Shown: positions 586 to 62,809 of the stretch, one piece after another
Layout: each line of letters opens with the position of its first letter
Position numbering within the stretch: position 1 is the first letter of the stretch
Assembly (NCBI GenBank): GCA_002269645.1
Contig: NIVC01000717.1
Span: 248,001-312,000, forward strand
Direction: 5' to 3'
Source: Macrostomum lignano
Taxonomy: Eukaryota
Length of the DNA: 64,000 nucleotides
The notes under the pieces: model-generated
Databases searched by the model: none
Told to the model about the DNA's origin: nothing
What the model saw: the letters and a program-made list of their open reading frames with translations, nothing else
Program-made: the position numbers and the translations under genes

Positions 586-738
586 TCTATCTACCTGGTC
601 TATTATTTCTGTCATAGCTCAAAGGAGTGATGCAAGCAGTGCTCGAAGCCCACTGGACTAGTGACAAAAATAGAACTAGTACTCAAAAATCACGTCTTTT
701 TGGCTTTTCTAGCATGACAACATCGAGCGTATACGCAC

Positions 739-6514: not shown

Positions 6515-6688
6515 TAAAAAAACTAGCCGAAAATTCAATTCAGACAATTCGGACTGGGGCAACGCTTACGCAAAATCAATAGAAACAAACCGAAGTTCAA
6601 AGCATTCTGCCACCGAAGCAAGGTTTGGCCATAGACAAAATTGTCCCCAGTCTGAATTGTCTGAATTGAATTTCCGCTAGTTTTTTTA
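6515..6688. mobile_element. Small MITE-like element with ~47-bp imperfect TIRs
   Basis: The arms are 6516-6562 (aaaaaaactagccgaaaattcaattcagacaattcggactggggcaa) and 6641-6687, its near-exact reverse complement. TA lies at both ends. Confidence 0.65.
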
Positions 6689-6719
6689 GAACTTTCTTTA
6701 GAACTTTTTTTAGAATTTT

Positions 6720-9136: not shown

Positions 9137-10184
9137 ATGCGCAATGGCAGTGTATGGTATGCGTCATTTTCTTTTGGAGGGAAGTGGGGGGCCACAGCAG
9201 ACCAAGAAAAGGTACTAGACTGCGCTTTGGACGAAAAAGCAGGACAAAAACTCGCATTGAAATCTGGCACCGCTCCCCCACCCCAAACTGCCGGAAGGTA
9301 TAGCTGTGGAAATTTACTCCAGATTCCGGGGTTGCTCGAGTTGAGTGAGCATACGTAACATGCAATGCATTATTTAAAGTTTTTACTGAAACGGACTCTT
9401 GGAAAAATTTTTGATAAGCATTGCGGGTTTGGTTTAAGGGGCAGCCTGCAAGGCAAACAGTCCAAGGCATTGTGGCGGAGAGTGTGCTTCGTGAGTCAGG
9501 CTTTCAGGCAGTCTGTCCCCCAGACCAGGGACCTCCTGGTCTAGTTGCTAGTTGCATGTTGCAGGTCTAGTTGCTGGCGTAGTTGCTGGGGACCGCGGTA
9601 AGTCTTTCTATTGTTCTGGCTTTATTTCTTAACTGAGGGGTAGGAAGGGAAGGGAAGCCTTTGATATCGATCAAAGAATTCTATGATCGATATCTAGAAT
9701 TCTATGTATCGATCGTGAGGGGGTAAGAGCTGGGATGCCATTTTTCCTACTTAGAAAGAGGCACACATTTCTTGCCCCCCATGCGCAGTCTAGTTATACT
9801 TACTGGTCTGTGGGTACAGGGTGTTTTTAAACTGCGGGTTGAGGTTTGTTGCATTGGCTGGGGTTGGTGCGTGTGGGGCTGGTGTGTTGGAGTTGGAGCA
9901 CAGACCATATAGAATAGTCCTGTCTCCGCTTGTGAACGTAAGCCTCTTATTTGCTGTTTTTTCTTTCCCACGCAGTCACTCGCAGAAGCTCCTGAGGCTC
10001 TCTAAATTCTCTTTCAGCTTTCTACTGTTACTCTCATAGTCCAAGTTTGAAGCTTGGTTTTGAAACTTTGCCAAGTTTGCTTTGTCTTACTTTAAAATAA
10101 ATTTTAACAAAGCACCATCAAACTTCCATAGCTAATTGTTCGTAATCCCGGTGCCTCCTCCAACGAGATTCGTTCTCGGGGAGC

Positions 10185-14223
<4,039 letters not shown>

Positions 14224-14799: not shown

Positions 14800-17690
14800 A
14801 TATGCATATATTCTTATTCCGATTGATAACCTATGCTGATATGCACACAATATTCCGATCGATAACCTATGCTGATATGGACACATTATCCCGATTGATA
14901 ACCTATGCTGATATGGACACATTATCCCGATTGATAACCTATGCTGATATGCACACATTATTCCGATTGATAACCTATGCTGATATGCACACAATATTCC
15001 GATCGATAACCTATGCTGATATGCACACATTATCCCGATTGATAACCTATGCTGATATGGACACATTATCCCGATTGATAACCTATGCTGATATGCACAC
15101 ATTATCCCGATTGATAACCTATGCTGATATGCACACATTATTCCGATCGATAACCTATGCTGATATGCACACATTATTCCGATTGATAACCTATGCTGAT
15201 ATGCACACATTATCCCGATTGATAACCTATGCTGATATGCACACATTATTCCGATCGATAACCTATGCTGATATGCACACATTATTCCGATTGATAACCT
15301 ATGCTGATATGCACACATTATTCCGATTGATAACCTATGCTGATATGCACACATTATTCCGATTGATAACCTATGCTGATATGCACACATTATTCCGATT
15401 GATAACCTATGCTGATATGCACACATTATTCCGATCGATAACCTATGCTGATATGCACACATTATCCCGATTGATAACCTATGCTGATATGCACACATTA
15501 TTCCGATCGATAACCTATGCTGATATGCACACATTATTCCGATCGATAACCTATGCTGATATGCACACATTATTCCGATTGATAACCTATGCTGATATGC
15601 ACACATTATCCCGATTGATAACCTATGCTGATATGCACACATTATTCCGATCGATAACCTATGCTGATATGCACACATTATTCCGATTGATAACCTATGC
15701 TGATATGCACACATTATTCCGATTGATAACCTATGCTGATATGCACACATTATTCCGATTGATAACCTATGCTGATATGCACACATTATTCCGATCGATA
15801 ACCTATGCTGATATGCACACATTATCCCGATCGATAACCTATGCTGATATGCACACATTATTCCGATTGATAACCTATGCTGATATGCACACATTATCCC
15901 GATTGATAACCTATGCTGATATGGACACATTATTCCGATTGATAACCTATGCTGATATGCACACATTATTCCGATCGATAACCTATGCTGATATGCACAC
16001 ATTATTCCGATCGATAACCTATGCTGATATGGACACATTATTCCGATTGATAACCTATGCTGATATGCACACATTATTCCGATTGATAACCTATGCTGAT
16101 ATGCACACATTATTCCGATTGATAACCTATGCTGATATGCACACATTATCCCGATTGATAACCTATGCTGATATGCACACATTATCCCGATTGATAACCT
16201 ATGCTGATATGCACACATTATTCCGATCGATAACCTATGCTGATATGCACACATTATCCCGATTGATAACCTATGCTGATATGCACACATTATTCCGATC
16301 GATAACCTATGCTGATATGGACACATTATTCCGATTGATAACCTATGCTGATATGCACACATTATTCCGATTGATAACCTATGCTGATATGCACACATTA
16401 TTCCGATCGATAACCTATGCTGATATGGACACATTATTCCGATTGATAACCTATGCTGATATGGACACATTATTCCGATTGATAACCTATGCTGATATGC
16501 ACACATTATTCCGATTGATAACCTATGCTGATATGCACACATTATTCCGATTGATAACCTATGCTGATATGCACACATTATTCCGATTGATAACCTATGC
16601 TGATATGGACACATTATTCCGATTGATAACCTATGCTGATATGCACACATTATTCCGATCGATAACCTATGCTGATATGGACACATTATTCCGATTGATA
16701 ACCTATGCTGATATGCACACATTATTCCGATCGATAACCTATGCTGATATGCACACATTATTCCGATTGATAACCTATGCTGATATGCACACATTATTCC
16801 GATTGATAACCTATGCTGATATGCACACATTATTCCGATTGATAACCTATGCTGATATGCACACATTATTCCGATTGATAACCTATGCTGATATGGACAC
16901 ATTATCCCGATCGATAACCTATGCTGATATGCACACAATATTCCGATCGATAACCTATGCTGATATGCACACATTATTCCGATTGATAACCTATGCTGAT
17001 ATGGACACATTATCCCGATTGATAACCTATGCTGATATGCACACATTATTCCGATCGATAACCTATGCTGATATGCACACAATATTCCGATCGATAACCT
17101 ATGCTGATATGGACACATTATTCCGATTGATAACCTATGCTGATATGGACACATTATCCCGATTGATAACCTATGCTGATATGCACACATTATTCCGATC
17201 GATAACCTATGCTGATATGCACACAATATTCCGATCGATAACCTATGCTGATATGCACACATTATTCCGATTGATAACCTATGCTGATATGGACACATTA
17301 TCCCGATTGATAACCTATGCTGATATGCACACATTATTCCGATTGATAACCTATGCTGATATGCACACATTATTCCGATCGATAACCTATGCTGATATGC
17401 ACACAATATTCCGATCGATAACCTATGCTGATATGGACACAATATTCCGATTGATAACCTATGCTGATATGGACACATTATCCCGATCGATAACCTATGC
17501 TGATATGCACACAATATTCCGATTGATAACCTATGCTGATATGCACACATTATTCCGATTGATAACCTATGCTGATATGCACACATTATTCCGATCGATA
17601 ACCTATGCTGATATGCACACTTTATTCCGATTGATAACCTATGCTGATATGCACACTTTATTCCGATCGATAACCTATGCCTACACATGT
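14800..17690. repeat. 36-bp satellite, ~80 copies
   Basis: The unit is ccgat(t/c)gataacctatgctgatatg(c/g)acaca(t/a)tat(t/c), with four recurrent two-state sites and no unique spacers. Confidence 0.97.
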
Positions 17691-30053: not shown

Positions 30054-30407
30054 CTACTTGGTCTTCTTAGCGCGAATCTTTCTCAGGTAGAAGTCCAACT
30101 CTTTGCCCTCCAGGATGTAGCCGTCCGCTCTGCCGCACTGGCCAGGCCGGGAGGTGAGGCAGGCGTACAGGCGGCCGCTGGCGAACTGCTCTAGCAGGGC
30201 TGGCGGCACCTCGGCCTGCGGAGCGTTCGGTTTTGGCATTATCGATTCATTGATTTATTTTCTAAACTGATGCTGGCTTAAACAGTCCACGTTTTCTACT
30301 ATGACCAGTAGTCAGTTAAGACTTTCTTTATTTCATTAACGGAAATCAGGTAGGGCCACCTGTCTATCTATCTACCAGTATCTATTCATCTGTCTATCAT
30401 TTATCTG

Positions 30408-30729: not shown

Positions 30730-31295
30730 GATCAATGATATTCAGACGCCAACAAGAACCGCACCTTCTTCTGCCTCTCCAGGTACTTCTTCATGGTTTT
30801 CTTGCTGCGGGTGAATGAGATGGGGCCACCGGCAGCGCCAGGATCGGCGCCCTCCTTGTCGGCGCCATCGGCAGGTTTGTCGGCGGCTTTAGGGGCGGAC
30901 TTCTTCTCCTTCTTGCGAGCCAATGGCAGCAGATAGTGCGACTCGAACCACTGACGGAATGGTGTAGCGTCAATCAGCACGATGGCATTTTTAACCAGAG
31001 TCTTGGTGCGCACCAGCTCATTGTTGCTAGCATTATACACTGTGTCGATAATGCGGGTTTTCCGAGCGACGCCTCTCGATGGCCAGCTGAAATTGCCGGT
31101 GTCCAACCGGAGACCTCGCAGCTTGATACCGCCGCCGCGGACTCGAACCGTGTGCACTCGCTTCACTGTGCCAGCCAGGGCAATCTTTGTGAGGCTGGGC
31201 GGCCGGCCCAGTTCGAACTTGCGCTTCTTACGCAGCTGTTCTCGGCGACCGCCTGTCTTACGGCGCTTGTGGGTTCGGTCTCGGGTGATGCCCAT
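30054..31295 (-). CDS. RPS8: 40S ribosomal protein S8 (eS8), 230 aa, 2 exons
   Basis: Exons are 30765-31295 and 30054-30215 (phase 0, AAG|GTGCGG..CCGCAG|GCC). Motifs: [78 protein letters not shown]. Confidence 0.98.
30361..30729. repeat. (TCTA)n microsatellite in the RPS8 intron
   Basis: Direct inspection. Confidence 0.97.
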
Positions 31296-34780: not shown

Positions 34781-41294
<6,514 letters not shown>

Positions 41295-43074: not shown

Positions 43075-43600
<526 letters not shown>

Positions 43601-43773
43601 CTAACTATTAACAAAAGAACTATTTTGATTAACAAAAGAACTAAGAGAACTGCTTAACTTTTGGATTTTGTTTATTGGACAGAAGCTAGTTGATTCTGTG
43701 GTAAATTCAGGAATGAATTAAAAGGTACACGTGGTACTGAAAAATATTCATAATGTGCTGGTTAGGGTACAAC

Positions 43774-44347
43774 TTGACTTGACTTAGCTGCAGGGGGCGT
43801 CCGGCGGATGCAGCGAGGAGGCGGAGGAGACCGCCCATTCCGCTAGTCCTAATGACTTCCGTTGAAGTGGTGTCGCTCAGGGGGACCCGTCGGTCTCGCC
43901 TGCAGCGCGGTCCTCCTCACCGACGGTGGGGAAGAAATCAGCTCGTCCCGTGTCCCTGAGGTACCGGGCGAGCAGCGGGATGCTCTCGGGCCTGCAAACG
44001 TCGGAGAGAACCGGGTTTGGCCCGAGGTGAGTGAGCCTGGCCCTGGTGAAAACCGGGCAGTGGCAGATAAAATGCTCGGCGTTTTCACTGCCTGAGCGGC
44101 AGAAGGGGCACCGCTCCTCGGGTACTTGGCCCTGGAGGAAGCGGTGGCGAGAGAAGCAGCCATGCCCGGAGAGGGCCATGCTAACTGCTCTGAGGTCTCT
44201 GCGGTTGAGCCTGAGGAGGGCTCTACGCAGGAGAGGAGAGGGGCAGGGGACGGCTGCCCGGGATTGCCTACAATTCCGGGTGTCGCGCCACCTGCGGAGA
44301 TGCTCGGAGTCAGTCCAGCGCTTAACGCGGGAGTTCATCACCGAGGC
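43774..44347 (-). mobile_element. 5'-truncated non-LTR retrotransposon 3' end (R1/Loa-like), flanked by a 12-bp TSD
   Basis: The minus-strand frame encodes LSGHGCFSRHRFLQG..CPFCRSGSENAEHFICHCPVFTRARLTHLG, a C-terminal knuckle typical of R1/Loa ORF2. A 3' UTR and short (AAGTC)n tail follow. The direct repeat TTAGGGTACAAC lies at 43762-43773 and 44348-44359. Confidence 0.88.
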
Positions 44348-45860
44348 TTAGGGTACAACACTTCTTCTGTCTTATTCTTAGGTGCATGTAACTTGTTACT
44401 GTCAGTTTCGGCCAATATTTTTTGTCATTTCCAGTTGCATAAACAATGGAGCTTAGCGATATGTGTGAAGAAACTGTTCTTTGGGTCCATCCAAAGAGTG
44501 AAATATTCATTAAGAGTTCGATACAAGTTCTAGTGTCACCAGATGATTTTAATCACGGATATAAAAACTACAGGTTCGGCTGGCTTTCGTTAAAGTCTGA
44601 CGTTCTGACTTTCATTTTAATTTCAAACGCGTTCTTATTCCTATACTAGGTATTACCGAGGTCCGTGTTGTCAACGCTATCCGACTGCTCACACTGTTAA
44701 ACTTAAAGGCAGCTTTTTTGCCAAAGAACTCTAGTTAATAGGGGTAGGCGTGATTAGACTTTGCCATATTAAGTTCCTATTTTTACCGTACATTATCTGA
44801 TGATATAATGAAGCAATCCTAACTGGTTGGTAATTTTCTTGGTGTTTTAAGCATTTATAGGGTAGCATTTAATGTTAAGGAAATAGCATCGTAGGCATGA
44901 CGAATACTTGAACATGTCTAGACTAAATAGAAAAGCTAAAGGGCTGGAAAAACTGTAGAACGTGCTCAAATCTCCAGTAGCTAGTCCAGTGTGCACATCA
45001 TTAGTGTACCGCATATCGATCTGCATTTGAATTTTTACCTCGAGAAAGAGATCGACATTTTATTTCGAATGATTTTTCTACATGGTCTCTTGCGTGGCAG
45101 CTTTTTCTCATTAAAATTCTAGTTCAGCATTATTAGTACTGTTTGTCATTTGAAAAACGGTTGCTAAAGGTTCGGTGCATCCGATCGGTTGAGGAATCAA
45201 ATATATTTGTTTGATTTTACGCTCATATTCTGGAAATTTTGTGGCATAGGTAAGTATTTATTAAGTTTGTAGAGCATACAACAACAACTAAGTTACAATT
45301 GATATAAATTCAGATTTCACAGAAACAAAAATGACAGAAATAAGCCTCTAATCAAGTTGGGTTTATAGACGAAGTTGATGTCGATATAACCATACACTCG
45401 TAGTAAGTCATCGGCTATGGGCTAATTATAACAAACTCGACTTTTAGAATTAAGAACACGCAAGACTTCTTGCAAGACACAAGAGATAGCTGAATGACGC
45501 ATGACTCATAATTGATTAAAACTCGTAATCGTCATTGACCAAGCTAAAGTCATTAAAATTAAATAAAACATGAAAAGCAGTTTCAACACGCAGGGGTCAT
45601 CAGCAAAGCTATTGTTTCCGTCACGTCGCTCAGAAGTTGCATGTACCTGTCTACGCTCGTAAAATACAATTGATGCAGTTTTGTGCAAAAAAGGCCCAAG
45701 TGAATTATTAAAATGACCACGGTTTTCTTCCAGTACTTTTACATTCGCTGTGCGAAAAGTTCATGAGCATTGTTCTAGATGACGCCTCAAGCTCATTAAA
45801 AAATATCTTCTTACTATTTCTTAGTGAAAATCCACAAAAACGTCTAAAAACTTCAACACG

Positions 45861-47117
45861 TCAGACAAACGGTTTGACTTCCTCTCTCATTGAAGTGGAA
45901 ATTCTTGACAATTCAACCATCTCAAAGTCCAATGCATTCCGACCGTGATTGCGACCCGGCTGTCGTTCTCGCTGCTCCGACAACCTCTGCACTTGATGCC
46001 TTTGTCGGCAAGTTCCTGACTGGCTCAGCCGGTGCCGACTGCCCCCATTCTGAGTCGGCGGATTCCGTAGCAGCACCTGCCGAAACGTGCTGTTCGTTTT
46101 CATGTAAATGAAGAAGTTGCACGTGGAGTCCAGGTTCAAGCACAGGTTGGTCACCTCAATGGCGTAGGCCATAAAGATGTCCCAAAATTTGCTCTCGTCG
46201 GGCAGCCGGATGCCGACCATCACGGTGAGGAACATCGGCATCTCCAGGCTAACGAAAGTAACCAGCAACAGTTGAACCATTCGAGTGGCTCTGCTCCTGC
46301 GCGCTTGACCATTGCTGAAGTGACATCGATGCAACTGGCTGCTCTGAGTTCGCTGATCCACAGACTGGCTCGTCGACTCGTTGATTAACTGGTTACCAAC
46401 GTTGGTTTCACGTCGCAAAACAATTGTCATAGCAACGGAAACCAGACCGACAATTATCACCGGCAGCACTGCTTGAAAGAACATCGAAGCGAGATAGAAC
46501 CCAGCATAGTTGCTGAAGGGTTCCACCGGCTGCACGCCAACAATGCGTCCAGTACTCGAGCAGAAGTCGTAGTTCTCTTGAAACGCCTTCGGCACTCCGA
46601 AAGCGCAGCTCAACAGTAGGACGCCAATGAAGCTGATCAGAACTGTTCGGTGGCTGAACACTCGTCGAACTCAGTGACGCGAGAACGGTCGCAGGACAAC
46701 TTCGTACCGAGTGACGGCAATGAGAACGATGCACCAGTTCCGAGCCATCAGGAAGGTGTTGGCTATAACCCAGGACACGCTCAGGTAGTCGATGGTTGCC
46801 TTAGCAACCGCGGCAGACGGATAGCTCACCCGGTCACGAAGAATATCCGTGAGCAGACGGATCGTCTGGACGCTGGTCATGCCCAGACTGGCCAGGGACT
46901 CCGTGGCCGACAGGAATAGCAGCAGAATGCGGACTATGCTCTCCTTCTGGCGATGCCAGAGAAACACCAGAAAGCTGATCGTGTTTAGGACCAGATTGAT
47001 TGACCCCAGCGAGATGAAGATTACCTTGAAGATGCCTTTGTAAACAGTTCGCGGATCGTTGATGGTGACATTGGTCAAGGAGCAGTTGTCATCGGTGAGA
47101 GTGACAAATGAAAACAT
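45861..47117 (-). pseudogene. Peptide-type (FMRFamide-receptor-like) GPCR paralogue A; intact 418-codon frame except an in-frame TGA at codon 149 (46671-46673)
   Basis: ORFs 46671..47162 and 45861..46661 are in the same frame. The ATG is at 47117, preceded by the acceptor-like TTACTTACAG. Seven TM segments are present (TM3 IAVTRY, TM7 DSTCNFFIY). Paralogue B has GGA (Gly) at this codon. Confidence 0.8.
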
Positions 47118-50100
47118 TTTACTAGCTGTAAGTAATTGCGTATTTGCGTAAAAGATTGCCAAAAGAAAAGAAATTCTTTAGGGACTTAGGCAAGATATAA
47201 AAGATCTCCCTTTTATGTTGTTTTTGTGCTGATTTGAAACTGGACAAGCAGATGTAAAAAGGAAGAAGTTGGGATGGTTTAGTCAGCCAATGGTAGATCG
47301 ATTTTCCATCCACACAAAGCCACTCATAGCCATGCACGGAGACGCCCTGCCAAGTCATTTTCGGATGCCTCCGGTCATTCTCTAGTTAGGTAACCATCTC
47401 GCGCTGGAGCTATCTATTCATATACAAAGCAACTCTTGATTCAAAATCATTTGCTACGAAAGAAATTGATTGGACTGGTTTGTGAGGCGAAAGCGCACAA
47501 ACCGGCTTTAGTGCCCAGCGCGTTGATTGTACATCGCCGCCTGCCCCCCCCTTTGGGTGGCAGGGGTGTTTTTAAACCCCCGTCGCGCTCTACTGGCGGC
47601 TCACTTTGCCTTCTCGCAGTGAAGTTTTTTTTCGTGTTAAGTTTGCTTTAAGCCAAATATACTCGTAGATTGAAGTTCGAAACACTTTTTTATTGACGGA
47701 GGCCTGCTTCGTTTCTGTGCCAAGTTCGCGTCTTAATGCCTTTGTTGCTGGAAGCACTAATGCAATATCTATGCCTCTGACGATGAAATTTTATCGTTTT
47801 GCGTAGAATGGGGATTCCTAAGATTTTTTCTCTGCACCTTTCAAAGCAGCTAGCAGCTAGGGTTCGGCGAACTTCTGCCCACATGCAGCCCTTGAAGCAT
47901 CTCTATGGAGCTCTCGGGTCATTTGAAACTTCGCAATGGCAATCTGGTCCGCTCAGGGTTTGTGTCGCTTCTCAGCTCCCTTTTCTTCTTTTTCTCCTCT
48001 CCACTCTCTTGTCTCTCTCTCCCCTCATCTCCACCCTCCTCTCATCTGCCCTCTCTCCTTTCTCTTTTCGCTTCTCCTCAATTCCCTTCTTTCCTCTCCT
48101 CTCCCTGGCCCGCAGTCATGCGCTAGATTCTACATTCAGCCCTCAAGTTAAAAAAGTTTGCCGACTTATGTTTTAAAGCTGACATTGCTCATACATGCTC
48201 CCTACTATCTCGCTGTTATGATAGCGTATTACCTCTCCGACCTTCACAGGGATTTTCGTTGTTGCTGTAATTTTTTAAATTGTCGTTTGCTGGTGAAAGA
48301 AATGCTAAATTGCTCAAATGATTAATTTGGTTGCTAACCATGAAAGGGGCGAAGAAACGGTGAACCATGCATGCCAACTTGATCGATAAACCGGATAAGT
48401 TAGACCCCGTACACTTTGAGGAAGTGGTCAGGGTCAATTGGCTTGCTTGATGGAAAGTTGGCCGAATACTACCCAAGCATTGCTATGGACGCATTGCTTT
48501 TAATGGCCCCGGCGTGACGTAGGTCACGTGACTGCACTGTACGCAGCCGGGAATGTACATTTAGAAGTGCCCTGATTAGGCAAATATTGGTATCGTTGCT
48601 TGAATAATGATGAGCTATTGTTGAAAACTTGGCAAACTGTTGGACGGACTTATGTTTGCTGATGTTGCATGATCAACAGTTGCTCCACCGTTGGCAAAAA
48701 AGGTTGGATGCCATCATTTGACTGGCTCAACTGGATTGCCGGCGGTTAAGGTTAGAGTGAATGTTTAGGTTAATTAATGTTTGGAATGTCGTAGACTCTC
48801 AATGTCGGTTTGAATGTCAAGCCTGCAATTAGAATAGGTTCGGGTGATATCCAATGACGGTTTTACTAAACGACTCGAATAACCGTAGAACAAAAATATG
48901 ATGCGCAATGCAGACAAAACAATTCTTTAGAAAGCAATTCTTATTTTAGAAATTGACTGGCTTAGAAAAGAAATGGCGCAATGCAAGCACGCTAGTGCAA
49001 CAAAAGCGAATCGTACATGTATAGAACTGGCTGATTAGCCAACAGGACGAAGACGGAGGCGAGGGCGTGGCGATGAGAACGAAGGGCAGGCGAGGCGAGA
49101 CCGCAAGCAAATGTATTTCGATATATTTAAGATTGAACACATTGAAAATCGCAGGATAAAACAACGGTAGAACAGGATAAAACAGGATAAAAAAGGATAT
49201 AACAGGAAAAAAACATTTTCTCACGCGAGGGCAGGGCGCAATGCACACAGGCCCGCGCACGGGCTTAAATGACCAGCCGCCCCACCACCCTACGCCTCCA
49301 CCCTGACGCCGGCAACAGGGCAGCCCGCGCGCAGGGGCGGCCGTCCTGTCAGCTTAACACGATTACGGCACCGGTACACCAGCACCGAAATCGCAAACAT
49401 ATTGAATAATCACCTCGTATAATTACGAGTTGGGCCTGCCATAGTACTACTGTGACAATATTAGCGCGAGTCTGGTTTACCTTTAGCCAGTGTTGTGTTA
49501 CAGGCCGGATCACTACCCTGACTATCACAGTGAACGAGCCGAAGATGGCGTCAGTCAACTGGCCGGACTGACTTCGGACTCTGAGCGGGGGATCGCGTCA
49601 GGAGACTTGATCAGCCTGTCCCTAATGCACAGATTAATTCCCGCCAGTCCCTCAAATAAAAAAGACACGCGACTCACTCTGTTTCTTCGGGTAACAGCGG
49701 TGGCGGCAGCAGGGGTGGCTTCTCTCAATGTTCTCTCTTCAGTCTATAGAATAGACAGGTATCTAGATTGCAGTATTAGACTTATGGCTGTGACTTGCAC
49801 AATTCAACCAAAAAGATGCCCCCCCCCTATCGCCGCTCCTGCACACATTTATATTTACGCTAGCTGGTTGAGCCCTAGGGTATCGCTACCCAAGGCCCAG
49901 CTAGCCAAAATTACGATCGTCTTATAAAAGTTACAAAGTCGGGGTCGCGATTGGAGGGGGGGAAAGAATACAAACCGATTGGCTGGACCACCAGCCAATC
50001 GCAGGGCGAGCGAGGGGCGCACTGGAGCCGCAGCCAGCCAAAACCGGCTGGCCTAACAGACAGTGGGGTGGGTGCAACTGGAGGGGGTTGACGCAGACAG

Positions 50101-51099
50101 AATGGGGGTTGGCGCAGGCACGCGGCCGGGGGGGGAGTGCAGTGCCGGGCACACTTGACCGAGAGCCAGAGATTGCTCATCGGTGCATGTGCACCCGGGC
50201 ACAACACTAGCTATTTTTTTCTGAAATCTATCGCATACCTACAGACAACTCATTTTTAGTATTAGTTATCTTCTTTTTCCTCGTGACCGGCACTTGAAAG
50301 TTTGGAATTATAAGAAATATTCGTTAAAAATTTATTGTTTAGCGTACACAGCTTTTATTAGCTCGTAGCTTAACAAAAGATGCAATCCAGGAAAGTCGCG
50401 GTGTCTCATACAGCGTAGCTTAAATGGGCCCTGCAGGACGTCCTAAGGAGACTGGGGCAGCAGCTCTCGGCCTGGATCACGTCCAGTCCAGCTGAATGTT
50501 TGTCTGACAGCAATTCCTGGAGGTGTCAGCACTAGTAGCACAATGTACGTGCTGCGGTCGGCTGCCGACGTTTAAAAGAGGCTCCATCAGGCTCCAAGGT
50601 CCTCTGAATAGAGACCTGGCTCAACCAGGATAGAACCGCTTGCTTCTAATTTTCATCATAAAGTTTCCTTTTTAAATATATCAATTTTCCAACAATATCC
50701 TGCCAATCTGATGGTCATTTTTCCCAGAAAAACTTTTTAGGAGTTTCATAACCTTTGTTTACCTACCCCAAATAGCACCTTTTTAATATAGTCTTACAAT
50801 AGGCTACGTACTCGTAAATAAACAAAACAGTACTATATATGGCCAGGTAAAAACTCCAGCGAGAAAAATCTGTTTTTTAATTGACAAACCTATGGATTTA
50901 ACTCGATTTGGATTAAAGCATAAAAAATCAGATTATTCTTAAAGACAACATTCCAGTTCAAGCTACGTGTAGAAAGACTTTCTAGCGCAAAACTTACTTT
51001 TTAACGTTCCTTGGAGACTAGTTTCAGTAGTAATTGTTGCCCATGGGATTCAAATACGCTATGGGAGCGGTTCAAGTATGCATGAATTAAACACCTAAC

Positions 51100-51380
51100 A
51101 GATATTGCGTGGCGGTCTGGTGTGCCAGCGGCCCAGGCTCGATTCCACATGCAGTCGCATTAATTTGGGGCTAAACTGGAATCCCAGCTTGTGTAATTAA
51201 CCGCCTTGAGAGCAAACCCCAATGCACAGTAAAGTGTACATGCCTAACGATCCTGTGAGTGTGTGCCTGTGCTTATGGCTGCGTACGTATCCGCGCGCTT
51301 GTATGCCTGCTCAGGGAAGTCGGCGGAATGGGCAGTAATGCCTCTTGCCGGTTGTGTGACAATGTCGCTTAAAGTGCACC
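51100..51380 (+). mobile_element. Putative tRNA-derived SINE, diverged copy 2
   Basis: It shares ordered blocks with 245-585 (gctcgattccacat, atttggggct, atgcctaacgat, ctgtgagtgtgtg, tgacaatgtcgct). Confidence 0.45.
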
Positions 51381-51860
51381 AGGGTCACACAGTCCCTGCC
51401 TCTTAAAAATATCTTATTTGGATGACGATATCACTTACGTCATCGGATTTTTCGTGTGATCGTGAAGAAGAAGAATAAAACATTACGAAAGCAAAGAGCC
51501 AAGGCGTGTTGTAAAAGTTTGCGTCCGTGGTCGGGGCAGCCAGGAAGTTCGAAGAGGAACAGTGACGCAAAATAGAAATAATTAGGTCACCCGAACTAAT
51601 AAGAAATAAATACCTCGACTCGACACAGCTGACATGCATTGGGCAGTCCTCAAGTGAAAAATCTTCAGTTAGAAATTATTTCCCGCTCGAGTGAATAGGA
51701 AAAATACATGTAGCTGGGAGGTTGCGGGCGTCCAGTGAGCCTCGGCTGGACCTGGATTAGTGTAACAAAACAGATGCGTTCTACAATTAAAAAGAACTCG
51801 ACAAGCGCTATATCGCAAGTTTAATGGTAAAATAAAACCTCTAATGCATACACTCAGCAA

Positions 51861-54800
51861 CTCTAGCCTCTATAGCCTCTAGCCTCAAGCCTCTAGCCTC
51901 TAGCCTCTAGCCTCTAGCCTCTAGCCTCTAGCCTCTATAGCCTCTAGCCTCTAGCCTCTAGCCTCTAGCCTCTAAGCCTGTAGCCTCTAGCCTCTAGCCT
52001 CTAGCCTCTAGCCTCTAGCCTCTAGCCTCGAGCCTCTATAGCCTCTAGCCTCGAGCCTCTATAGCCTCTAGCCTCTAGCCTCTAGCCTCGAGCCTCTATA
52101 TCCTCTAGCCTCTAGCCTCTAGCCTCTAGCCTATATAGCCTCTAGCCTCTAGCCTCTAGCCTATATAGCCTCTAGTCTATAGCCTCTAGCCTCTAGTCTC
52201 TAGCCTCTAGCCTCTAGCCTCTAGCCTCTAGCCTCTAGCCTCTAGCCTCTAGCCTCTAGCCTCTAGCCTCTAGCCTCTATAGCCTCTAGCCTCTAGCCTC
52301 TAGCCTCTAGCCTCTAGCCTCTAGCCTCTAGCCTCTAGCCTCTAGCCTCTAGCCTCTAGCCTCTAGCCTCTAGCCTCTATAGCCTCTAGCCTCTAGCCTC
52401 TATAGCCTCTAGCCTCTAGCCTCTAGCCTCTAGCCTCTATAGCCTCTAGCCTCTAGCCTCGAGCCTCTAGCCTCTAGCCTCTAGCCTCTAGCCTCTATAG
52501 CCTCTAGCCTCTAGCCTCTAGCCTCTAGCCTCTAAGCCTGTAGCCTCTAGCCTCTAGCCTCTAGCCTCTAGCCTCTAGTCTCTAGCCTCTAGCCTCTAGC
52601 CTCTAGCCTCTAGCCTCTAGCCTCTAGCCTCCAGCCTCTAGCCTCTAGCCTCTAGCCTCTAGCCTCTAGCCTCTAGCCTCTAGCCTCTAGCCTCTAGCCT
52701 CTAGCCTCTAGCCTCTAGCCTCTATAGCTCGTAGCCTCTAGTCTCTAGCCTCTATATCCTCTAGCTCCTAGCCTCCAGCCTCTAGTTTATAGCCTCTATA
52801 GCCTTCAGCCTCTAGCCTCTAGCCTCTAGCCTCTAGCCTCTAGCCTCTAGCCTCTAGCCTCTAGCCTCTAGCCTCTATAGCTCGTAGCCTCTAGTCTCTA
52901 GCCTCTATATCCTCTAGCTCCTAGCCTCCAGCCTCTAGCCTCTATAGCTCGTAGCCTCTATAGCTCGTAGCCTCTAATCTCTAGCCTCTATATCCTCTAG
53001 CCTCTTGTCTCTAGCCTCTATAGCCTCTAGCCTCTAGCCTCTAGCCTCTAGCCACATAGCCTCTAGCCACATAGCCTCTAGCCTCTAGCCTCTAGCCTAT
53101 AGCCTCTATAGCCTCTAGCCTCTAGCCTCTAGCCTCTAGCCTCTATAGCTTGTAGCCTCTAGTCTCTAGCCTCTATATCCTCTAGCCTCTAGCCTCTAGC
53201 CTCTATAGCCTCTAGCCTCTATAGCCTCTAGCCTCTATAGCCTCTAGCCTCTATAGCCTCTAGCCTCTATAGCCTCTAGCCTCAAGACTCTAGCCTCTAG
53301 CCTCTAGCCTCTAGCCTCTAACCTCTAGCCTCTAGCCTCTAGCCTCTAGCCTCTAGCCTCTAGCCTCTAGCCTCTAGCCTCTAGCCTCTAGCCTCTATAG
53401 CTCGTAGCCTCTAGTCTCTAGCCTCTATATCCTCTAGCCTCTATAGCCTCTAGCCTCTATAGCCTCTAGCCTCTATAGCCTCTAGCCTCTATAGCCTCTA
53501 GCCTCAAGACTCTAGCCTCTAGCCTCTAGCCTCTAGCCTCTAACCTCTAGCCTCTAGCCTCTAGCCTCTAGCCTCTAGCCTCTAGCCTCTAGCCTCTAGC
53601 CTCTAGCCTCTAGCCTCTAGCCTCTAGCCTCTAGCCTCTAGCCTCTAGCCTCTATAGCTCGTAGCCTCTAGTCTCTAGCCTCTATATCCTCTAGCTCCTA
53701 GCCTCCAGCCTCTAGCCTCTATAGCTCGTAGCCTCTATAGCTCGTAGCCTCTAATCTCTAGCCTCTATATCCTCTAGCCTCTTGTCTCTAGCCTCTATAG
53801 CCTCTAGCCTCTAGCCTCTAGCCTCTAGCCTCTAGCCTCTAGCCTATAGCCTCTATAGCCTCTAGCCTCTAGCCTCTAGCCTCTAGCCTCTATAGCTCGT
53901 AGCCTCTAGTCTCTAGCCTCTATATCCTCTAGCCTCTAGCCTCTAGCCTCTAGCCTCTAGCCTCTAGCCTCTAAGCCTCTAGCCTCTAGCCTCTAGCCTC
54001 TAGCCTCTAGCCTCTAGCCTCTAGCCTCTAGCCTCTAGCCTCTAGCCTCTAGCCTCTAGCCTCTAGCCTCTAGCCTCTAGCCTCTAGCCTCTAGCCTCTA
54101 GCCTCGAGCCTCTAGCCTATATAGCCTCTAGCCTATATAGCCTCTAGCCTCTAGCCTCTAGCCTTCAGCCTCTAGACTCTAGCCTCTAGCCTCTAGCCTC
54201 TAGCCTCTAGCCTCTAGCCTCTAGCCTCTAGCCTCTAGCCTCTAGCCTCTAGCCTCTAGCCTCTAGCCTCTAGCCTCTAGCCTCTAGCCTCTAGCCTCTA
54301 GCCTCTAGCCTCTATAGCTCGTAGCCTCTAGTCTCTAGCCTCTATATCCTCTAGCTCCTAGCCTCCAGCCTCTAGTTTATAGCCTCTATAGCCTTCAGCC
54401 TCTAGCCTCTAGCCTCTAGCCTCTAGCCTCTAGCCTCTAGCCTCTAGCCTCTAGCCTCTAGCCTCTATAGCTCGTAGCCTCTAGTCTCTAGCCTCTATAT
54501 CCTCTAGCTCCTAGCCTCCAGCCTCTAGCCTCTATAGCTCGTAGCCTCTATAGCTCGTAGCCTCTAATCTCTAGCCTCTATATCCTCTAGCCTCTTGTCT
54601 CTAGCCTCTATAGCCTCTAGCCTCTAGCCTCTAGCCTCTAGCCACATAGCCTCTAGCCACATAGCCTCTAGCCTCTAGCCTCTAGCCTATAGCCTCTATA
54701 GCCTCTAGCCTCTAGCCTCTAGCCTCTAGCCTCTATAGCTTGTAGCCTCTAGTCTCTAGCCTCTATATCCTCTAGCCTCTAGCCTCTAGCCTCTATAGCC

Positions 54801-57699
54801 TCTAGCCTCTATAGCCTCTAGCCTCTATAGCCTCTAGCCTCTATAGCCTCTAGCCTCTATAGCCTCTAGCCTCAAGACTCTAGCCTCTAGCCTCTAGCCT
54901 CTAGCCTCTAACCTCTAGCCTCTAGCCTCTAGCCTCTAGCCTCTAGCCTCTAGCCTCTAGCCTCTAGCCTCTAGCCTCTAGCCTCTAGCCTCTATAGCTC
55001 GTAGCCTCTAGTCTCTAGCCTCTATATCCTCTAGCCTCTATAGCCTCTAGCCTCTATAGCCTCTAGCCTCTATAGCCTCTAGCCTCTATAGCCTCTAGCC
55101 TCTAGCCTCTAGCCTCTATAGCCTCTAGCCTCTATAGCCTCTAGCCTCTATAGCCTCTAGCCTCTATAGCCTCTAGCCTCTATAGCCTCTAGCCTCAAGA
55201 CTCTAGCCTCTAGCCTCTAGCCTCTAGCCTCTAACCTCTAGCCTCTAGCCTCTAGCCTCTAGCCTCTAGCCTCTAGCCTCTAGCCTCTAGCCTCTAGCCT
55301 CTAGCCTCTAGCCTCTATAGCTCGTAGCCTCTAGTCTCTAGCCTCTATATCCTCTAGCCTCTATAGCCTCTAGCCTCTATAGCCTCTAGCCTCTATAGCC
55401 TCTAGCCTCTATAGCCTCTAGCCTCAAGACTCTAGCCTCTAGCCTCTAGCCTCTAGCCTCTAACCTCTAGCCTCTAGCCTCTAGCCTCTAGCCTCTAGCC
55501 TCTAGCCTCTAGCCTCTAGCCTCTAGCCTCTAGCCTCTATAGCTCGTAGCCTCTAGTCTCTAGCCTCTATATCCTCTAGCTCCTAGCCTCCAGCCTCTAG
55601 CCTCTATAGCTCGTAGCCTCTATAGCTCGTAGCCTCTAATCTCTAGCCTCTATATCCTCTAGCCTCTTGTCTCTAGCCTCTATAGCCTCTAGCCTCTAGC
55701 CTCTAGCCTCTAGCCTCTAGCCTCTAGCCTATAGCCTCTATAGCCTCTAGCCTCTAGCCTCTAGCCTCTAGCCTCTATAGCTCGTAGCCTCTAGTCTCTA
55801 GCCTCTATATCCTCTAGCCTCTAGCCTCTAGCCTCTAGCCTCTAGCCTCTAGCCTCTAAGCCTCTAGCCTCTAGCCTCTAGCCTCTAGCCTCTAGCCTCT
55901 AGCCTCTAGCCTCTAGCCTCTAGCCTCTAGCCTCTAGCCTCTAGCCTCTAGCCTCTAGCCTCTAGCCTCTAGCCTCGAGCCTCTAGCCTATATAGCCTCT
56001 AGCCTATATAGCCTCTAGCCTCTAGCCTCTAGCCTTCAGCCTCTAGACTCTAGCCTCTAGCCTCTAGCCTCTAGCCTCTAGCCTCTAGCCTCTAGCCTCT
56101 AGCCTCTAGCCTCTAGCCTCTAGCCTCTAGCCTCTAGCCTCTAGCCTCTAGCCTCTAGCCTCTAGCCTCTAGCCTCTAGCCTCTAGCCTCTAGCCTCTAT
56201 AGCTCGTAGCCTCTAGTCTCTAGCCTCTATATCCTCTAGCTCCTAGCCTCCAGCCTCTAGTTTATAGCCTCTATAGCCTTCAGCCTCTAGCCTCTAGCCT
56301 CTAGCCTCTAGCCTCTAGCCTCTAGCCTCTAGCCTCTAGCCTCTAGCCTCTATAGCTCGTAGCCTCTAGTCTCTAGCCTCTATATCCTCTAGCTCCTAGC
56401 CTCCAGCCTCTAGCCTCTATAGCTCGTAGCCTCTATAGCTCGTAGCCTCTAATCTCTAGCCTCTATATCCTCTAGCCTCTTGTCTCTAGCCTCTATAGCC
56501 TCTAGCCTCTAGCCTCTAGCCTCTAGCCACATAGCCTCTAGCCACATAGCCTCTAGCCTCTAGCCTCTAGCCTATAGCCTCTATAGCCTCTAGCCTCTAG
56601 CCTCTAGCCTCTAGCCTCTATAGCTTGTAGCCTCTAGTCTCTAGCCTCTATATCCTCTAGCCTCTAGCCTCTAGCCTCTATAGCCTCTAGCCTCTATAGC
56701 CTCTAGCCTCTATAGCCTCTAGCCTCTATAGCCTCTAGCCTCTATAGCCTCTAGCCTCAAGACTCTAGCCTCTAGCCTCTAGCCTCTAGCCTCTAACCTC
56801 TAGCCTCTAGCCTCTAGCCTCTAGCCTCTAGCCTCTAGCCTCTAGCCTCTAGCCTCTAGCCTCTAGCCTCTAGCCTCTATAGCTCGTAGCCTCTAGTCTC
56901 TAGCCTCTATATCCTCTAGCCTCTATAGCCTCTAGCCTCTATAGCCTCTAGCCTCTATAGCCTCTAGCCTCTATAGCCTCTAGCCTCAAGACTCTAGCCT
57001 CTAGCCTCTAGCCTCTAGCCTCTAACCTCTAGCCTCTTGCCTCTAGCCTCTAGCCTCTAGCCTCTAGCCTCTAGCCTCTAGCCTCTAGCCTCTAGCCTCT
57101 ATAGCTCGTAGCCTCTAGTCTCTAGCCTCTATATCCTCTAGCTCCTAGCCTCCAGCCTCTAGCCTCTATAGCTCGTAGCCTCTATAGCTCGTAGCCTCTA
57201 ATCTCTAGCCTCTATATCCTCTAGCCTCTTGTCTCTAGCCTCTATAGCCTCTAGCCTCTAGCCTCTAGCCTCTAGCCTCTAGCCTCTAGCCTATAGCCTC
57301 TATAGCCTCTAGCCTCTAGCCTCTAGCCTCTAGCCTCTATAGCTCGTAGCCTCTAGTCTCTAGCCTCTATATCCTCTAGCCTCTAGCCTCTAGCCTCTAG
57401 CCTCTAGCCTCTAGCCTCTAAGCCTCTAGCCTCTAGCCTCTAGCCTCTAGCCTCTAGCCTCTAGCCTCTAGCCTCTAGCCTCTAGCCTCTAGCCTCTAGC
57501 CTCTAGCCTCTAGCCTCTAGCCTCTAGCCTCTAGCCTCGAGCCTCTAGCCTATATAGCCTCTAGCCTATATAGCCTCTAGCCTCTAGCCTCTAGCCTTCA
57601 GCCTCTAGACTCTAGCCTCTAGCCTCTAGCCTCTAGCCTCTAGCCTCTAGCCTCTAGCCTCTAGCCTCTAGCCTCTAGCCTCTAGTCTCTAGCCTCTAG
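51861..57699. repeat. (GCCTCTA)n heptamer satellite, ~5.8 kb, with higher-order repeats
   Basis: The marker gccacatag occurs at 53051, 54641 and 56526. The marker gccttcagcctctagactc occurs at 54161, 56032 and 57594. Confidence 0.97.
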
Positions 57700-58709
57700 T
57701 CTTGTGAAAGCAACCCATTATTATGCATTCGGATAGTCCATCATATGCAACAGTCGAGCCATAACATATAATGTAAGTGGAGATCATACTATGGAAAGCA
57801 TGCAGTCTACTGATTTTACTTATTAAAACATTAATTGTTTCTTAATAGTCTGTTTGAATTACTTCCAGTATAGTTTTCTGAAATTAGTAACTACCTAGAG
57901 CTCCCTATTATTCTGGCCTATATACAAAAGTTGGAACAGACATCGGACGGGCTATGCTTTCCTACTCAAAAAGCTTCATTTTTCCTGACTAAAGTCTTGA
58001 TTGGGTCTTGGTTTTGGTTGTCACTAGGCTATAGGTTAGATAAGGCATGATCAACAGCATTTAACGATTAACGACGCAAGACGGATTGAAAATTAACTTT
58101 GCAGCCCTCGTCTAGCTGCCTCGGAAATTGAATTGAGGTAAACGCAATCTAATTATATAGATGATTCTCGAATGAATTATACGATCTTTTTCTGCCGAAG
58201 CCACCCGAGACAGAACTACGATAACTAGCTATACATGCAGTTCGCCTCGGGATTTCGAGGTGCAATTACGTCCCTATTCAACTCTTTGAAGCAGCTAAAA
58301 AGAACTTGCTCGGTTGGTCATGCCCAGCAATTTGTAACACCCCATTTGTCAGGTGCGTTAGGGTAGGTCAGAGGACGTCTAAATGTTGCACAGGTGGATT
58401 AAGCCTACGGAATTAGAGTAAACAAATTTACTTGATCGTCAAAAATCAGCTCATAAAGCGCTGGGTCAAGTCAAATCGATAACGAAGCAAGGAGAGGAGA
58501 AATTTACATGTTCGATCAGTCGTAATGGCGGGTGAATATTAATTTTTAATAGCATTCCATTACTGCGAAGAAAATGTAACTTGCTTTTTGGATTATCTGT
58601 TCCCTGGGGGTGAAATAGGACTGGTTACAAATGCAGTCAGGACATAATCTATCTACGTTTTATACTTTTACATTTCCGGGGTAAGTTGGTTAGTGAGCAA
58701 GAGCATAAA

Positions 58710-59121
<412 letters not shown>

Positions 59122-60792
59122 GCCTTTTGTAAATGTCTTTGTTGTGAAAGCGTTTGCGAACAGATAGCGCTTCTGCTGTGAGACGTTTCTTGTCTATGAA
59201 GTTATATTAGCAGGCATATACTCGTAGTATAACTTGTTTGGACTCACATTTACAAGCAATTACAGTGAAAGCAAACAAAATTAAGCATGCAGTTTAAGGA
59301 AAAAAATTTCATTTCTCGGGAGAAGCAATATCAAGCGGGGCTTATCAGGAGCAAAAGTCGACATGAGGATAAAAGGCTTCAAAATTTTTCAATATCCATA
59401 GTTTTCCTGATGTTTTAAAAAACCCCATGTCTGTGTATATCAATTCCAACTTTCACTAAACGTTGAGTTATAAAAAATGATCAATCTGATGAAGAAGCCT
59501 CCTGATATCTATTGGCAGCTTTAGCCGTTGGCTTCTTACGACAACGGAGTTTCCTCTGATCAACATTTTATCATGCAGTTCCAGTAAAGTGCTTGTTTTT
59601 TGTACTTTACTAGAAATTGTAGTATAGTTGCGCTTATGCCTCTGTCTTAGCTTTAATTTTTACCCTTCAGCCGCCATCACAGAAAGACAGAGAGCTCCTC
59701 ATCAAGATCGAACTGCGGATAAATACTGATTGAAGCTTGAGAAGATCGAATCAAAAATTTTAACCAGTTTTAATTAACTTTATCGCCACTTCAAAGAACG
59801 AAGTCATGCGTTACTCCTATGATTCAAATTTGAACGTCACAAAACAAGGAGATATCATTAAAAAATTCACCAAAGCAAAGAAATTAGCGAAAGAAGTGGA
59901 GAGGCGGTGACTTAAAACTGAACTTGGCTATCAAAGAAAATCTGCTCAAAGTTTCTGCGCTTGGCGTCCAATTACCCTTGCCAGAGACAACAATCGACAT
60001 GGAGTATCGTTGGGTAGGTCGGTGGACGTCTGAATGTCGAAGCTGTGTGTGTAGCAGGCTGTGTAATAATTACATGAATATCAATCAATTAATTGATATT
60101 TAAGCTATCAGATGAAGAAAATTGTTTTTACGATAGACATTTTGGATAGATAACATCGCTGCTAAAATAGCACTTGTACTTTTAAGCACAGATTTTCAGC
60201 GACAGTGACTGACTGCTTGTTGGCCTTGTCAACAATCGAACTGATTGCTGATGCAATTATTATAATATAATTCAGAAAATACGGCGCAGAATCTGGGAGG
60301 GGGGCTTTCTACAACTTATTCATAAAAAACAAAATATAGAAGCTTTAAGTTTTAGCTATCTGCTACCAGTATTCCTTATTCGTAGCAGGTTGTAATCTTT
60401 AAATTGCAATGCACTGATAAAACCAAATTCATTGAAACTAGGACAAAAAAGATAGCATATTGTTATCTGTCACGTCGTTCATGAATTATCCGTTCACGTT
60501 TTAAAAGAATATTGCGGTGCAATTGTCTTAAACGGTTTGAACAAAAAATCACGCTAGAGGAACAAGGGACTTTATTTTTTTGATAAGAGCTTTGCTTACC
60601 TCTAAGTAGTACTTTTTACATCCGCTCTGCTACAAAGAATTGGGGGTTGTTTTAGGCTCAGACTAAAGCGCGATCAATGAGATCGAGTCCAAGGTTTGCA
60701 ACTTCAACCTGCCTTTTTAACGCGTAAAAACTTTTACGAGCTGTAGACACTTTGTTGTTGATGTAGCTTAAACAAGCGTACAGGTAAATCAG

Positions 60793-62022
60793 TCAGACAA
60801 GCTGGTATTTTTTCGCTCTATTTAAACTAGAAATTCTTGATAATTCAGCCATTTCATAGTTCCGCGAATTTCGAGCTCGATTTTGATGCTGCTGTTCCTG
60901 ATGCCCTCGCCTGTTCCTTTCTGAACGGCTCAGCCGGTGCCGACTGGCGCCATTCTGAGTCGGCGGATTCCGTAGCAGCACCTGCCGAAACGTGCTGTTC
61001 GTTTTCATGTAAATGAAGAAGTTGCACGTGGAGTCCAGGTTCAAGCACAGGTTGGTCACCTCCATTGCGTAGGCCATAAAGATGTCCCAAAATTCGCTCT
61101 CGTCGGGCAGCCGGATGCCGACCATGACGGTGAGGAACATCGGCATCTCCAGGCTAACGAAAGCAACCAGCAACAGTTGAACCATTCGAGTGGCTCTACT
61201 CCTGCGCGCTTGACCGTTGCTGCAGTGTCATCGATGCAGCTGTCTGCTCTGAGTTCGCTGATCCACAGACTGGCTCGTCGACTCGTTGATTAACTGGTTA
61301 CCAACGTTGGTTTCACGTCGCAAAACAATTGTCATAGCAACGGAAACCAGACCGACAATTATCACTGGCAGCACTGCTTGAAAGAACATCGAAGCGAGAT
61401 AGAACCCAGCATAGTTGCTGAAGGGTTCCACCGGTTGCACGCCAACAATGCGTCCAGTACTCGAGCAGAAGTCGTAGTTCTCTTGAAACGCCTTCGGCAC
61501 TCCGAAAGCGCAGCTCAACAGTAGGATGCCAATGAAGCTGATCAGAACTGTTCGGTGGCTGAACACTCGTCGAACTCCGTGACGCGAGAACGGTCGCAGG
61601 ACAACTTCGCACCGAGTGACGGCAATGAGAACGATGCACCAGTTCCGAGCCATCAGGAAGGTGTTGGCTATAACCCAGGACACGCTTAGGTAGTCGATGG
61701 TTGCCTTAGCAACCGCGGCAGACGGATAGCTCACCCGGTCACGAAGAATATCAGTGAGCAGACGGATCGTCTGGACGCTGGTCATGCCCAGACTGGCCAG
61801 GGACTCCGTGGCCGACAGGAATAGCAGCAGAATGCGGACTATGCTCTCCTTCTGGCGATGCCAGAGAAACACCAGAAAGCTGATCGTGTTTAGGACCAGA
61901 TTGATTGACCCCAGCGAGATGAAGATTACCTTGAAGATGCCTTTGTAGACAGTTCGCGGATCGTTGATGGTGACATTCGCCAAGGTGCAGTTTTCATCGG
62001 TGAGAGGAACAAAGGAGAACAT
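60793..62022 (-). pseudogene. Peptide-type GPCR paralogue B; intact 409-codon frame except an in-frame TGA at codon 265 (61228-61230) in ICL3
   Basis: ORFs 61228..62022 (TM1-5) and 60793..61185 (TM6-7) are in the same frame. The sequence is colinear with paralogue A, which has TGT (Cys) at this codon (46323-46325). The same TACTTACAG acceptor-like site lies upstream of the ATG. Confidence 0.8.
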
Positions 62023-62809
62023 TTTTCTAGCTGTAAGTAATTGCGTCTTTTTTGTAAGTTATTGCCAATAGATTATCATGTCGAATTCTCTAGATTTAGG
62101 AAGAATTTGTATAGTATCCCCAAAACGCGGGGCTAGCTTTTATGCTTGCTGGTACAGGCAAATCCGACTTGAAATGCAGAAGTCGGGCCTGCTGGTGCAG
62201 CCAATAGTAGGCAGAGTTACGAGCGTACCGTTCCCATCAAGCGCTGGGGACGGCTTGTGTCGCATGCAAAGTCAGATTATAAGTATGAACTCTCTAGCCG
62301 TTTGCTTGCGTCCTAGGATGAAATAATCGCATCTTGAGCGTAAATTATAGGAGAAAAATATGATTTATAGTTCTTATGCAAGGCTTAGAACAACCTTAGC
62401 TTAATAAATCTTGTGATATCGTCGAGATTCCGAGAGAAATTTCAAGTTATTTTTGGTCTGTTAGTGACGCCTTAAAGTTTAATGTTCTATGGAGACTTAA
62501 AAGTACCACAAATTCGATAAAGCTACTGGGTTATCTTGCATCTGTTAATGTTGATCGTGACGCTAGAGGATGAGAAAAAAATTATCGGCAATTGCTCATT
62601 GTCCCATGCTGTACCCTCATTGCGTACCTTTCTGTACGCTCATCATTTAACGATTCGAAATCATTGCGTATGGCTACTAAAATGAGACATGAGACAATAT
62701 GCCTGTGTGTATGGTTTTGGAGGCAGACATTGGTAGATTTTCAGGAGTGGCGAAGCCAAAAGTGATAAAAATTAATCAGTGTTTATGACCATTGCCTGCC
62801 TCTAAAAGC

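Follow-up and report, generated by a model that had tools for sequence, protein, structure and literature searches.

A tandem pair of gene-converted GPCR genes in Macrostomum lignano, each with one premature TGA that probably reflects very recent inactivation

How can two neighbouring receptor genes be almost identical over their coding body while each of them is interrupted by a single in-frame TGA, located at a different codon in each copy? This question is raised by a 64,000-nucleotide stretch of the genome of the flatworm Macrostomum lignano (assembly GCA_002269645.1, contig NIVC01000717.1, positions 248,001 to 312,000 of the forward strand), which was analysed as a whole and is hereafter called the window; all coordinates refer to it. 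The genes encode G protein-coupled receptors (GPCRs) of class A and are designated copies A and B. Judged from their sequences, the two stops probably represent a real and recent inactivation, or null alleles, of both copies, in genes whose shared body had earlier been homogenised by gene conversion. Readings in which the stops are decoded, repaired or mistaken are weighed below, where the evidence that bears on them is presented.

Copy A occupies positions 45861..47117 of the minus strand (1257 nt, 418 codons plus the terminal TGA), and copy B, in the same orientation and 14.9 kb apart, positions 60793..62022, also of the minus strand (1230 nt, 409 codons plus the terminal TGA). Both are single-exon frames, and translation of the minus strand revealed no frameshift and exactly one internal stop in each. 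The premature TGA of copy A was found at codon 149 (46671..46673, minus strand; context cac TGA gtt, next base G), where copy B reads GGA for Gly, and that of copy B at codon 265 (61228..61230, minus strand; context cga TGA cac, next base C), where copy A reads TGT for Cys; the two stops are separated by 348 nt. The direction of change, from sense codon to TGA, was judged at each site solely from the other copy. By hydropathy peaks and the family alignment, codon 149 lies in the second intracellular loop (ICL2), which joins transmembrane helices (TM) 3 and 4, and codon 265 in the third (ICL3), which joins TM5 and TM6. In these respects, the preliminary description of the locus, which had reported GGA>TGA in ICL2 with a TGA-G context, TGT>TGA in ICL3 with a TGA-C context, and frames free of frameshifts, was borne out by translation, by comparison of each copy with the other and by hydropathy. 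The colinearity without indels that it had noted through codon 265 holds further, to codon 375, the first indel being a 27-bp in-frame gap in the C-terminal tail. Despite the divergence of these tails, both genes end in a shared terminal TGA. When copy B was compared with the window by tblastn, its residues 1-404 aligned to copy A at 89%, and no third copy of the receptor was detected within the window.

Apart from the TGAs, both copies look, at the sequence level, like fully competent members of their clade. Copy B matched the Pfam model PF00001 (7tm_1) with 34.4 bits against a gathering cut-off of 30.5 (E = 2.2e-8, residues 49-338), and weak Pfam matches were also obtained to the nematode chemoreceptor models Srv and Srw. 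A Kyte-Doolittle scan gave six clear peaks, corresponding to TM1-6, while the TM7 segment (approximately residues 313-338, DS..NFFIY) stayed under the hydropathy threshold, yet aligned with TM7 of the relatives. Neither the canonical E/DRY nor the canonical NPxxY motif is present: TM3 carries T-R-Y in copy A and T-R-C in copy B, in which only the Arg is retained, and TM7 carries N-F-F-I-Y in both copies, in which only the Asn and the Tyr are retained. Since the relatives share this R and the N..IY pattern, the nonstandard motifs are a clade-wide variant and not damage. In a 26-member family alignment, the invariant positions were R126-N127-W128, R137, C186, P219, F288, D330-S331, N334 and Y338, and neither A nor B has lost any of them. 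The amino-acid differences between the copies, such as Y/C138, fall in family-variable columns, and both stops sit in gap-rich loop columns.

The relatives themselves are distant. A word-index protein search with the receptor returned none at E ≤ 0.001, and an exact look-up of the 264-aa fragment of copy B in the protein collections found no record. When 1.84 billion representatives were scanned exhaustively with HMMER, 118 relatives emerged at E ≤ 1e-3, the best of them at about 31% identity. All those with a name, among them PAA76711.1 and PAA47587.1, are hypothetical GPCRs of M. lignano, and the other top matches are Logan contigs. The relative PAA76711.1 (P0004) is encoded by a single 1143-bp exon, and no tandem pseudogenes were found within ±10 kb of it, the locus consisting of a single intact gene. 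Free-living flatworms are known to harbor hundreds of class-A GPCRs, which have expanded in tandem within particular lineages, truncated genes and pseudogenes being among them (Mol Biol Evol 2025, PMC11886862). Several rhodopsin groups restricted to flatworms have been described, namely PROF1/Srfb, Srfa, Srfc, Rho-L and Rho-R (PMC6114109). Copies A and B probably belong to a divergent, intronless, lineage-specific expansion of this kind, which is probably chemoreceptor-like.

The divergence between the two copies is markedly mosaic. A tract of high identity (96.45% over 1155 bp by blastn) extends over 46013..47166 in copy A and 60918..62072 in copy B, both on the minus strand, and comprises about 49 nt of 5′ leader and codons 1 to approximately 368. 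Within the body, defined as codons 1-365, 29 of the 1095 sites differ, with 15 synonymous and 12 non-synonymous differences, no indels, and 8, 3 and 18 differences at the first, second and third codon positions, respectively. The C-terminal tails, running from codon 366 to the stop (45861..46022 in copy A, which has 9 codons more, and 60793..60927 in copy B, minus strand), are only about 64-70% identical. In their 43 alignable codons, synonymous divergence (dS) reached 0.56 and non-synonymous divergence (dN) 0.46, against a dS of 0.059 and a dN of 0.015 in the body. The contrast between 29/1095 differences in the body and 46/129 in the tail was highly significant (Fisher P = 1.7e-29), and the flanks of the two genes gave no alignment even at word size 7. 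Because silent divergence jumps tenfold at a sharp boundary, a single recent duplication is excluded. These features point to an old tandem duplication, the coding body of which would have been overwritten later by interlocus gene conversion. The near-identical body between diverged tails and flanks had been noticed in the preliminary description, and gene conversion, which it had offered as one possible cause, is favored by the approximately tenfold lower dS of the body. Simple recent duplication was also ruled out by the far greater divergence of the tail and 3′ flank, and the same divergence, together with the lack of a shared 3′ end, ruled out a retrocopy origin.

The 5′ end of the tract is less uniform. 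Eight of the 29 body differences are concentrated in the opening 45 nt of the frame (P ~1e-5), which may reflect a second tract boundary or else rapid evolution of an extracellular N-terminus. Beside these first 15, unusually diverged codons stands a leader in which the approximately 27 nt directly 5′ of both ATGs (within 47118..47166 and 62023..62072) are almost identical (ACGCAATTACTTACAG/CTAG.AAAATG) and hold a possible splice or trans-splice acceptor. The conserved leader next to diverged first codons hints either that the 5′ leader is constrained or that conversion had a boundary of its own here. Nested conversion tracts were sought through the longest identical run, which measured 194 nt and was not significant (P = 0.10); the comparison consists of two sequences with no close outgroup, for which tests of the GENECONV type are impossible.

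The constraint on the body also bears on the age of the lesions. The dN/dS ratio (omega) was 0.25, which is not near 1 and departs from neutrality (binomial P = 5e-4), and, together with the absence of indels, it makes pseudogene status compatible only with very recent inactivation. The preliminary description had considered it odd that copies of such high identity should both be dead. If conversion is granted and the lesions are taken to be very recent, nothing odd is left. A freshly dead gene necessarily shows one lesion and the footprint of earlier purifying selection. Recent double pseudogenisation, which had been listed among several options, is accordingly the best fit to an omega of 0.25, to differences biased toward third positions, to frames without frameshifts and to the retention of the family-invariant residues. 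Nor do two stops need any special mechanism if they were unselected, because the gene contains about 31 nonsense 'sites' and, at a dS of 0.059, about 1.8 nonsense mutations are expected neutrally over both lineages, where 2 were observed.

It may be asked, however, whether the TGAs are stops at all. They could be decoded by readthrough, by selenocysteine (Sec) insertion or after adenosine-to-inosine editing of UGA to UGG, so that both genes would be full-length. Both stops do sit in intracellular loops that are variable and rich in gaps and would tolerate any residue; that of copy B stands in a UGA-C context, which is a comparatively leaky one, and is faced in copy A by a Cys, just as Cys and Sec can face each other in homologous proteins. 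Even so, the UGA-C of copy B lacks any known extended readthrough motif, the TGA of copy A stands for Gly and not Cys, and TGA is the conserved terminator of both genes. No selenocysteine insertion sequence (SECIS) element or any other Rfam match was found at E ≤ 5 in either gene plus 1.5 kb of its 3′ flank, and nothing in the whole window reached the Rfam gathering score. The 100 nt located 3′ of the TGA of copy B fold no better than shuffled sequences (z = -0.1), and the corresponding fold in copy A (z = -2.2) arises from a stretch that copy B shares unchanged behind a sense codon. The dN/dS ratio is as low 3′ of the stops as 5′ of them, as decoding would predict, but low values are equally expected for very young pseudogenes. 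Orthologues in which the stops could be compared across species were not found in the exhaustive search. The leaky context and the Cys opposite a TGA do not amount to evidence of recoding. With the SECIS missing, the downstream structure unremarkable and the terminal TGA shared, nothing supports the readthrough option of the preliminary description, or selenocysteine. Decoding of the two codons is, in our judgment, very improbable. An alternative code in which TGA is sense was ruled out, since M. lignano is a metazoan flatworm with the standard nuclear code and the two genes share a terminal TGA.

A different way of keeping both genes useful would be to keep them as a pair, either as a conversion reservoir, in which an exchange between codons 149 and 265 restores a complete receptor, or as complementing fragments. 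Gene conversion has demonstrably acted on this very segment before, and a tract spanning only one of the stops, which are 348 nt apart, would repair a copy. This part of the earlier suggestion stands only trivially: it is a property of any differently damaged pair of paralogues, and no sign of selection for it was found. Paired lesions were not found as a pattern of the family either, the one related locus examined being a single intact gene. As for complementation, a split at ICL3 need not keep the pieces of a GPCR from reassembling in heterologous systems. However, copy A would supply TM1-3 and copy B TM1-5, so that a TM6-7 fragment is unavailable from either gene without internal initiation, and transcripts with premature stops are normally degraded; fragment complementation, another option of the preliminary description, is not upheld. 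A pair retained for either purpose is likewise very improbable. Even taken together, the recoding, reservoir and complementation readings are improbable, and we consider it very improbable that the UGAs are decoded or the pair periodically repaired by conversion, as would be required for this flatworm chemoreceptor locus to persist as two 'dead' but jointly recoverable copies.

There is also the question of whether the stops exist in the animal. Consensus errors, or bases imported during short-read polishing from near-identical copies on the other subgenomes, could have created one or both of them, in which case at least one receptor would really be intact. Assemblies of M. lignano are error-prone: the fraction of error-free bases according to REAPR was 31.92% in ML2 and 63.95% in Mlig_3_7, transcripts with intact open reading frames (ORFs) were more numerous in Mlig_3_7 than in ML2, and 180 Mb of assembly lie in blocks that are at least 95% identical (PMC5730564). 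In addition, the genome comprises three homeologous subgenomes (PMC10733133). On the other hand, PacBio consensus errors are typically indels, and both 1.2-kb frames are without a frameshift. The window otherwise reads cleanly: it has no Ns, an ORF of 1010 codons and that of a further GPCR run without interruption, and the RPS8 exons agree with the protein in the database. It would take a large coincidence for two independent substitution errors within 2.4 kb each to create a stop, and mis-polishing would still imply a TGA in some copy. A homeologous locus was sought through the neighbouring genes: the KATNAL2 neighbour (UniRef model P0244) led to no contig on record, and a paralogue of RPS8 (P0125) led to three Mlig_3_7 contigs, but in a different neighbourhood. 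Altogether, an artefact appears unlikely, but it retains appreciable weight, more than the readings discussed above.

Real and recent inactivation of both copies thus remains the probable explanation, and the following course of events may be proposed for it. Copies A and B would have arisen by an old tandem duplication; much later, gene conversion would have copied about 1.15 kb, comprising the 5′ leader and codons 1 to approximately 365, from one copy to the other, and for most of the period since then purifying selection would have acted on both. In the very recent past, independent nonsense transversions, G>T at codon 149 of copy A and T>A at codon 265 of copy B, would have truncated the predicted products to TM1-3 and TM1-5, respectively, neither of which is expected to signal. 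The genes would now be either pseudogenes of very young age or null alleles that are fixed in an inbred laboratory line or still segregate there. The loss was probably tolerated through redundancy, provided by a large family and by the three homeologous subgenomes reported for M. lignano (PMC10733133). Functionally overlapping neighbours may plausibly lose constraint together, and the inbred, laboratory-kept line may be a further reason for tolerance. The anatomy of the genes, their species and family, the mosaic divergence, the former constraint and the lack of recoding signals are shown by the data; which way and how lately the codons mutated, that function was lost and why this was tolerated are what we infer.

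Four points weigh against this explanation. First, if nonsense mutations had been removed as efficiently as missense ones, only 0.46 would be expected, and the probability of at least two is about 0.08, so that the recent loss of both copies is a mild coincidence. Second, no intact or homeologous copy of the receptor was found in the protein collections searched, and redundancy among homeologues is thus assumed. Third, both TGAs were read from a single assembly. Fourth, the substitutions are not assignable to lineages when just two sequences, lacking a close outgroup, can be compared.

What was noticed at this locus is correct, but the phenomenon is ordinary: a tandem pair of GPCR genes that underwent conversion, each probably hit very recently by a single nonsense lesion. 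No new mechanism is opened by it. The locus adds two unannotated members, both broken as sequenced, to a poorly described, divergent and intronless GPCR clade of M. lignano. It also offers a clean example of interlocus gene conversion followed, as we read it, by inactivation of very recent date; the genome is neopolyploid, and decay of redundant genes is to be expected in it. For genome annotators, it means that such models need read-level checks before they are labelled as pseudogenes.

The remainder of the window contains microsatellites, minisatellites, remnants of a non-LTR (long terminal repeat) reverse transcriptase element and intron-containing genes, which mark it as eukaryotic. Much of the spacer between copies A and B is filled by a 5.8-kb satellite of about 800 copies of a 7-bp unit, (CTCTAGC)n, at 51861..57699, which is not part of the duplicated unit and is strongly strand-asymmetric (GC skew approximately -0.48, AT skew approximately -0.28). 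Two tetranucleotide arrays lie downstream of the receptors, (CTAA)n on the plus strand at 43237..43607, 2.25 kb downstream of copy A, and (TTAG)n on the plus strand at 58710..59121, 1.7 kb downstream of copy B. Because these arrays of the same unit face opposite ways while the genes face the same way, they do not belong to a single duplicated segment. Another open single-exon class-A GPCR frame was identified at 709..1779 of the minus strand (Pfam 7tm_1, E = 5e-15). It showed no detectable similarity to A or B by tblastn, and the window therefore holds receptors of at least two clades.

An uninterrupted ORF of 1010 codons at 11191..14223 (plus strand) matches no Pfam domain, and the protein collection contains no exact entry for it. 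The motifs AAIVRGR.E..LV.P and LVP....G.Y recur three times in it by eye, and a BLASTP self-comparison found no significant internal repeat. A 2.9-kb minisatellite of 36-bp units follows at 14814..17680 (about 80 copies, 96% matches) and gives rise, on either strand, to spurious ORFs longer than 1000 codons. Remnants of non-LTR retrotransposons, with a GC content of 56-62% and long overlapping ORFs on both strands, were observed at 6597..9470, with an RVT_1 domain at 7116..7775, and at 43849..44533, with a CCHC-like C-terminal ORF2 tail at 43877..44341.

Two conserved genes were also recognized. RPS8 lies on the minus strand in two exons (31295..30762 and 30218..30057) that match the M. lignano UniRef entry A0A1I8HN52, at 100% over the first 177 residues and again in the second exon, a match that by itself assigns the window to this species; its intron of about 540 bp is almost wholly a (GATA)n microsatellite. 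The RPS8 paralogue mentioned above is intronless and 84% identical, and its presence on three contigs fits three subgenomes. KATNAL2 (katanin p60-like 2), a multi-exon gene on the plus strand at 34781..41291, has its best match in M. lignano, and its last exon (approximately 41175..41291) lies just past a (GTCT)n array at 40742..41132. Its exons match the M. lignano UniRef model only at 87-97%, indicating a homeologue or a differing gene model.

When the locus is set beside known systems, its resemblance to selenoprotein genes and to programmed UGA readthrough is limited to the in-frame TGA with a Cys codon in the paralogue, at codon 265 of copy B. Unlike those genes, it has no SECIS and no conserved downstream signal, its other TGA stands for Gly, and TGA also terminates both genes. 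There is also a likeness to gene conversion among tandem paralogues, as in the globin, opsin and olfactory-receptor clusters, where a sharp-edged coding block of low divergence likewise lies amid old tails and flanks; the comparison here covers only two sequences.

The lesions can be compared with the young or segregating chemoreceptor pseudogenes of vertebrate olfactory-receptor and nematode sr families. They differ in that both members of the pair were hit at once and in that a chemosensory role is here only presumed, and they agree in the single nonsense mutation within an otherwise intact frame, in the past purifying selection, in the tandem layout and in the membership of a family of rapid birth and death. 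At the level of the family, A and B have no relative above about 31% identity in the collections searched. With the class-A GPCR expansions of free-living Platyhelminthes (PMC11886862; PMC6114109), they share a divergent rhodopsin-class sequence whose named relatives are only from M. lignano, an intronless and tandem organization, weak matches to Srv and Srw, and the occurrence of pseudogenised members.

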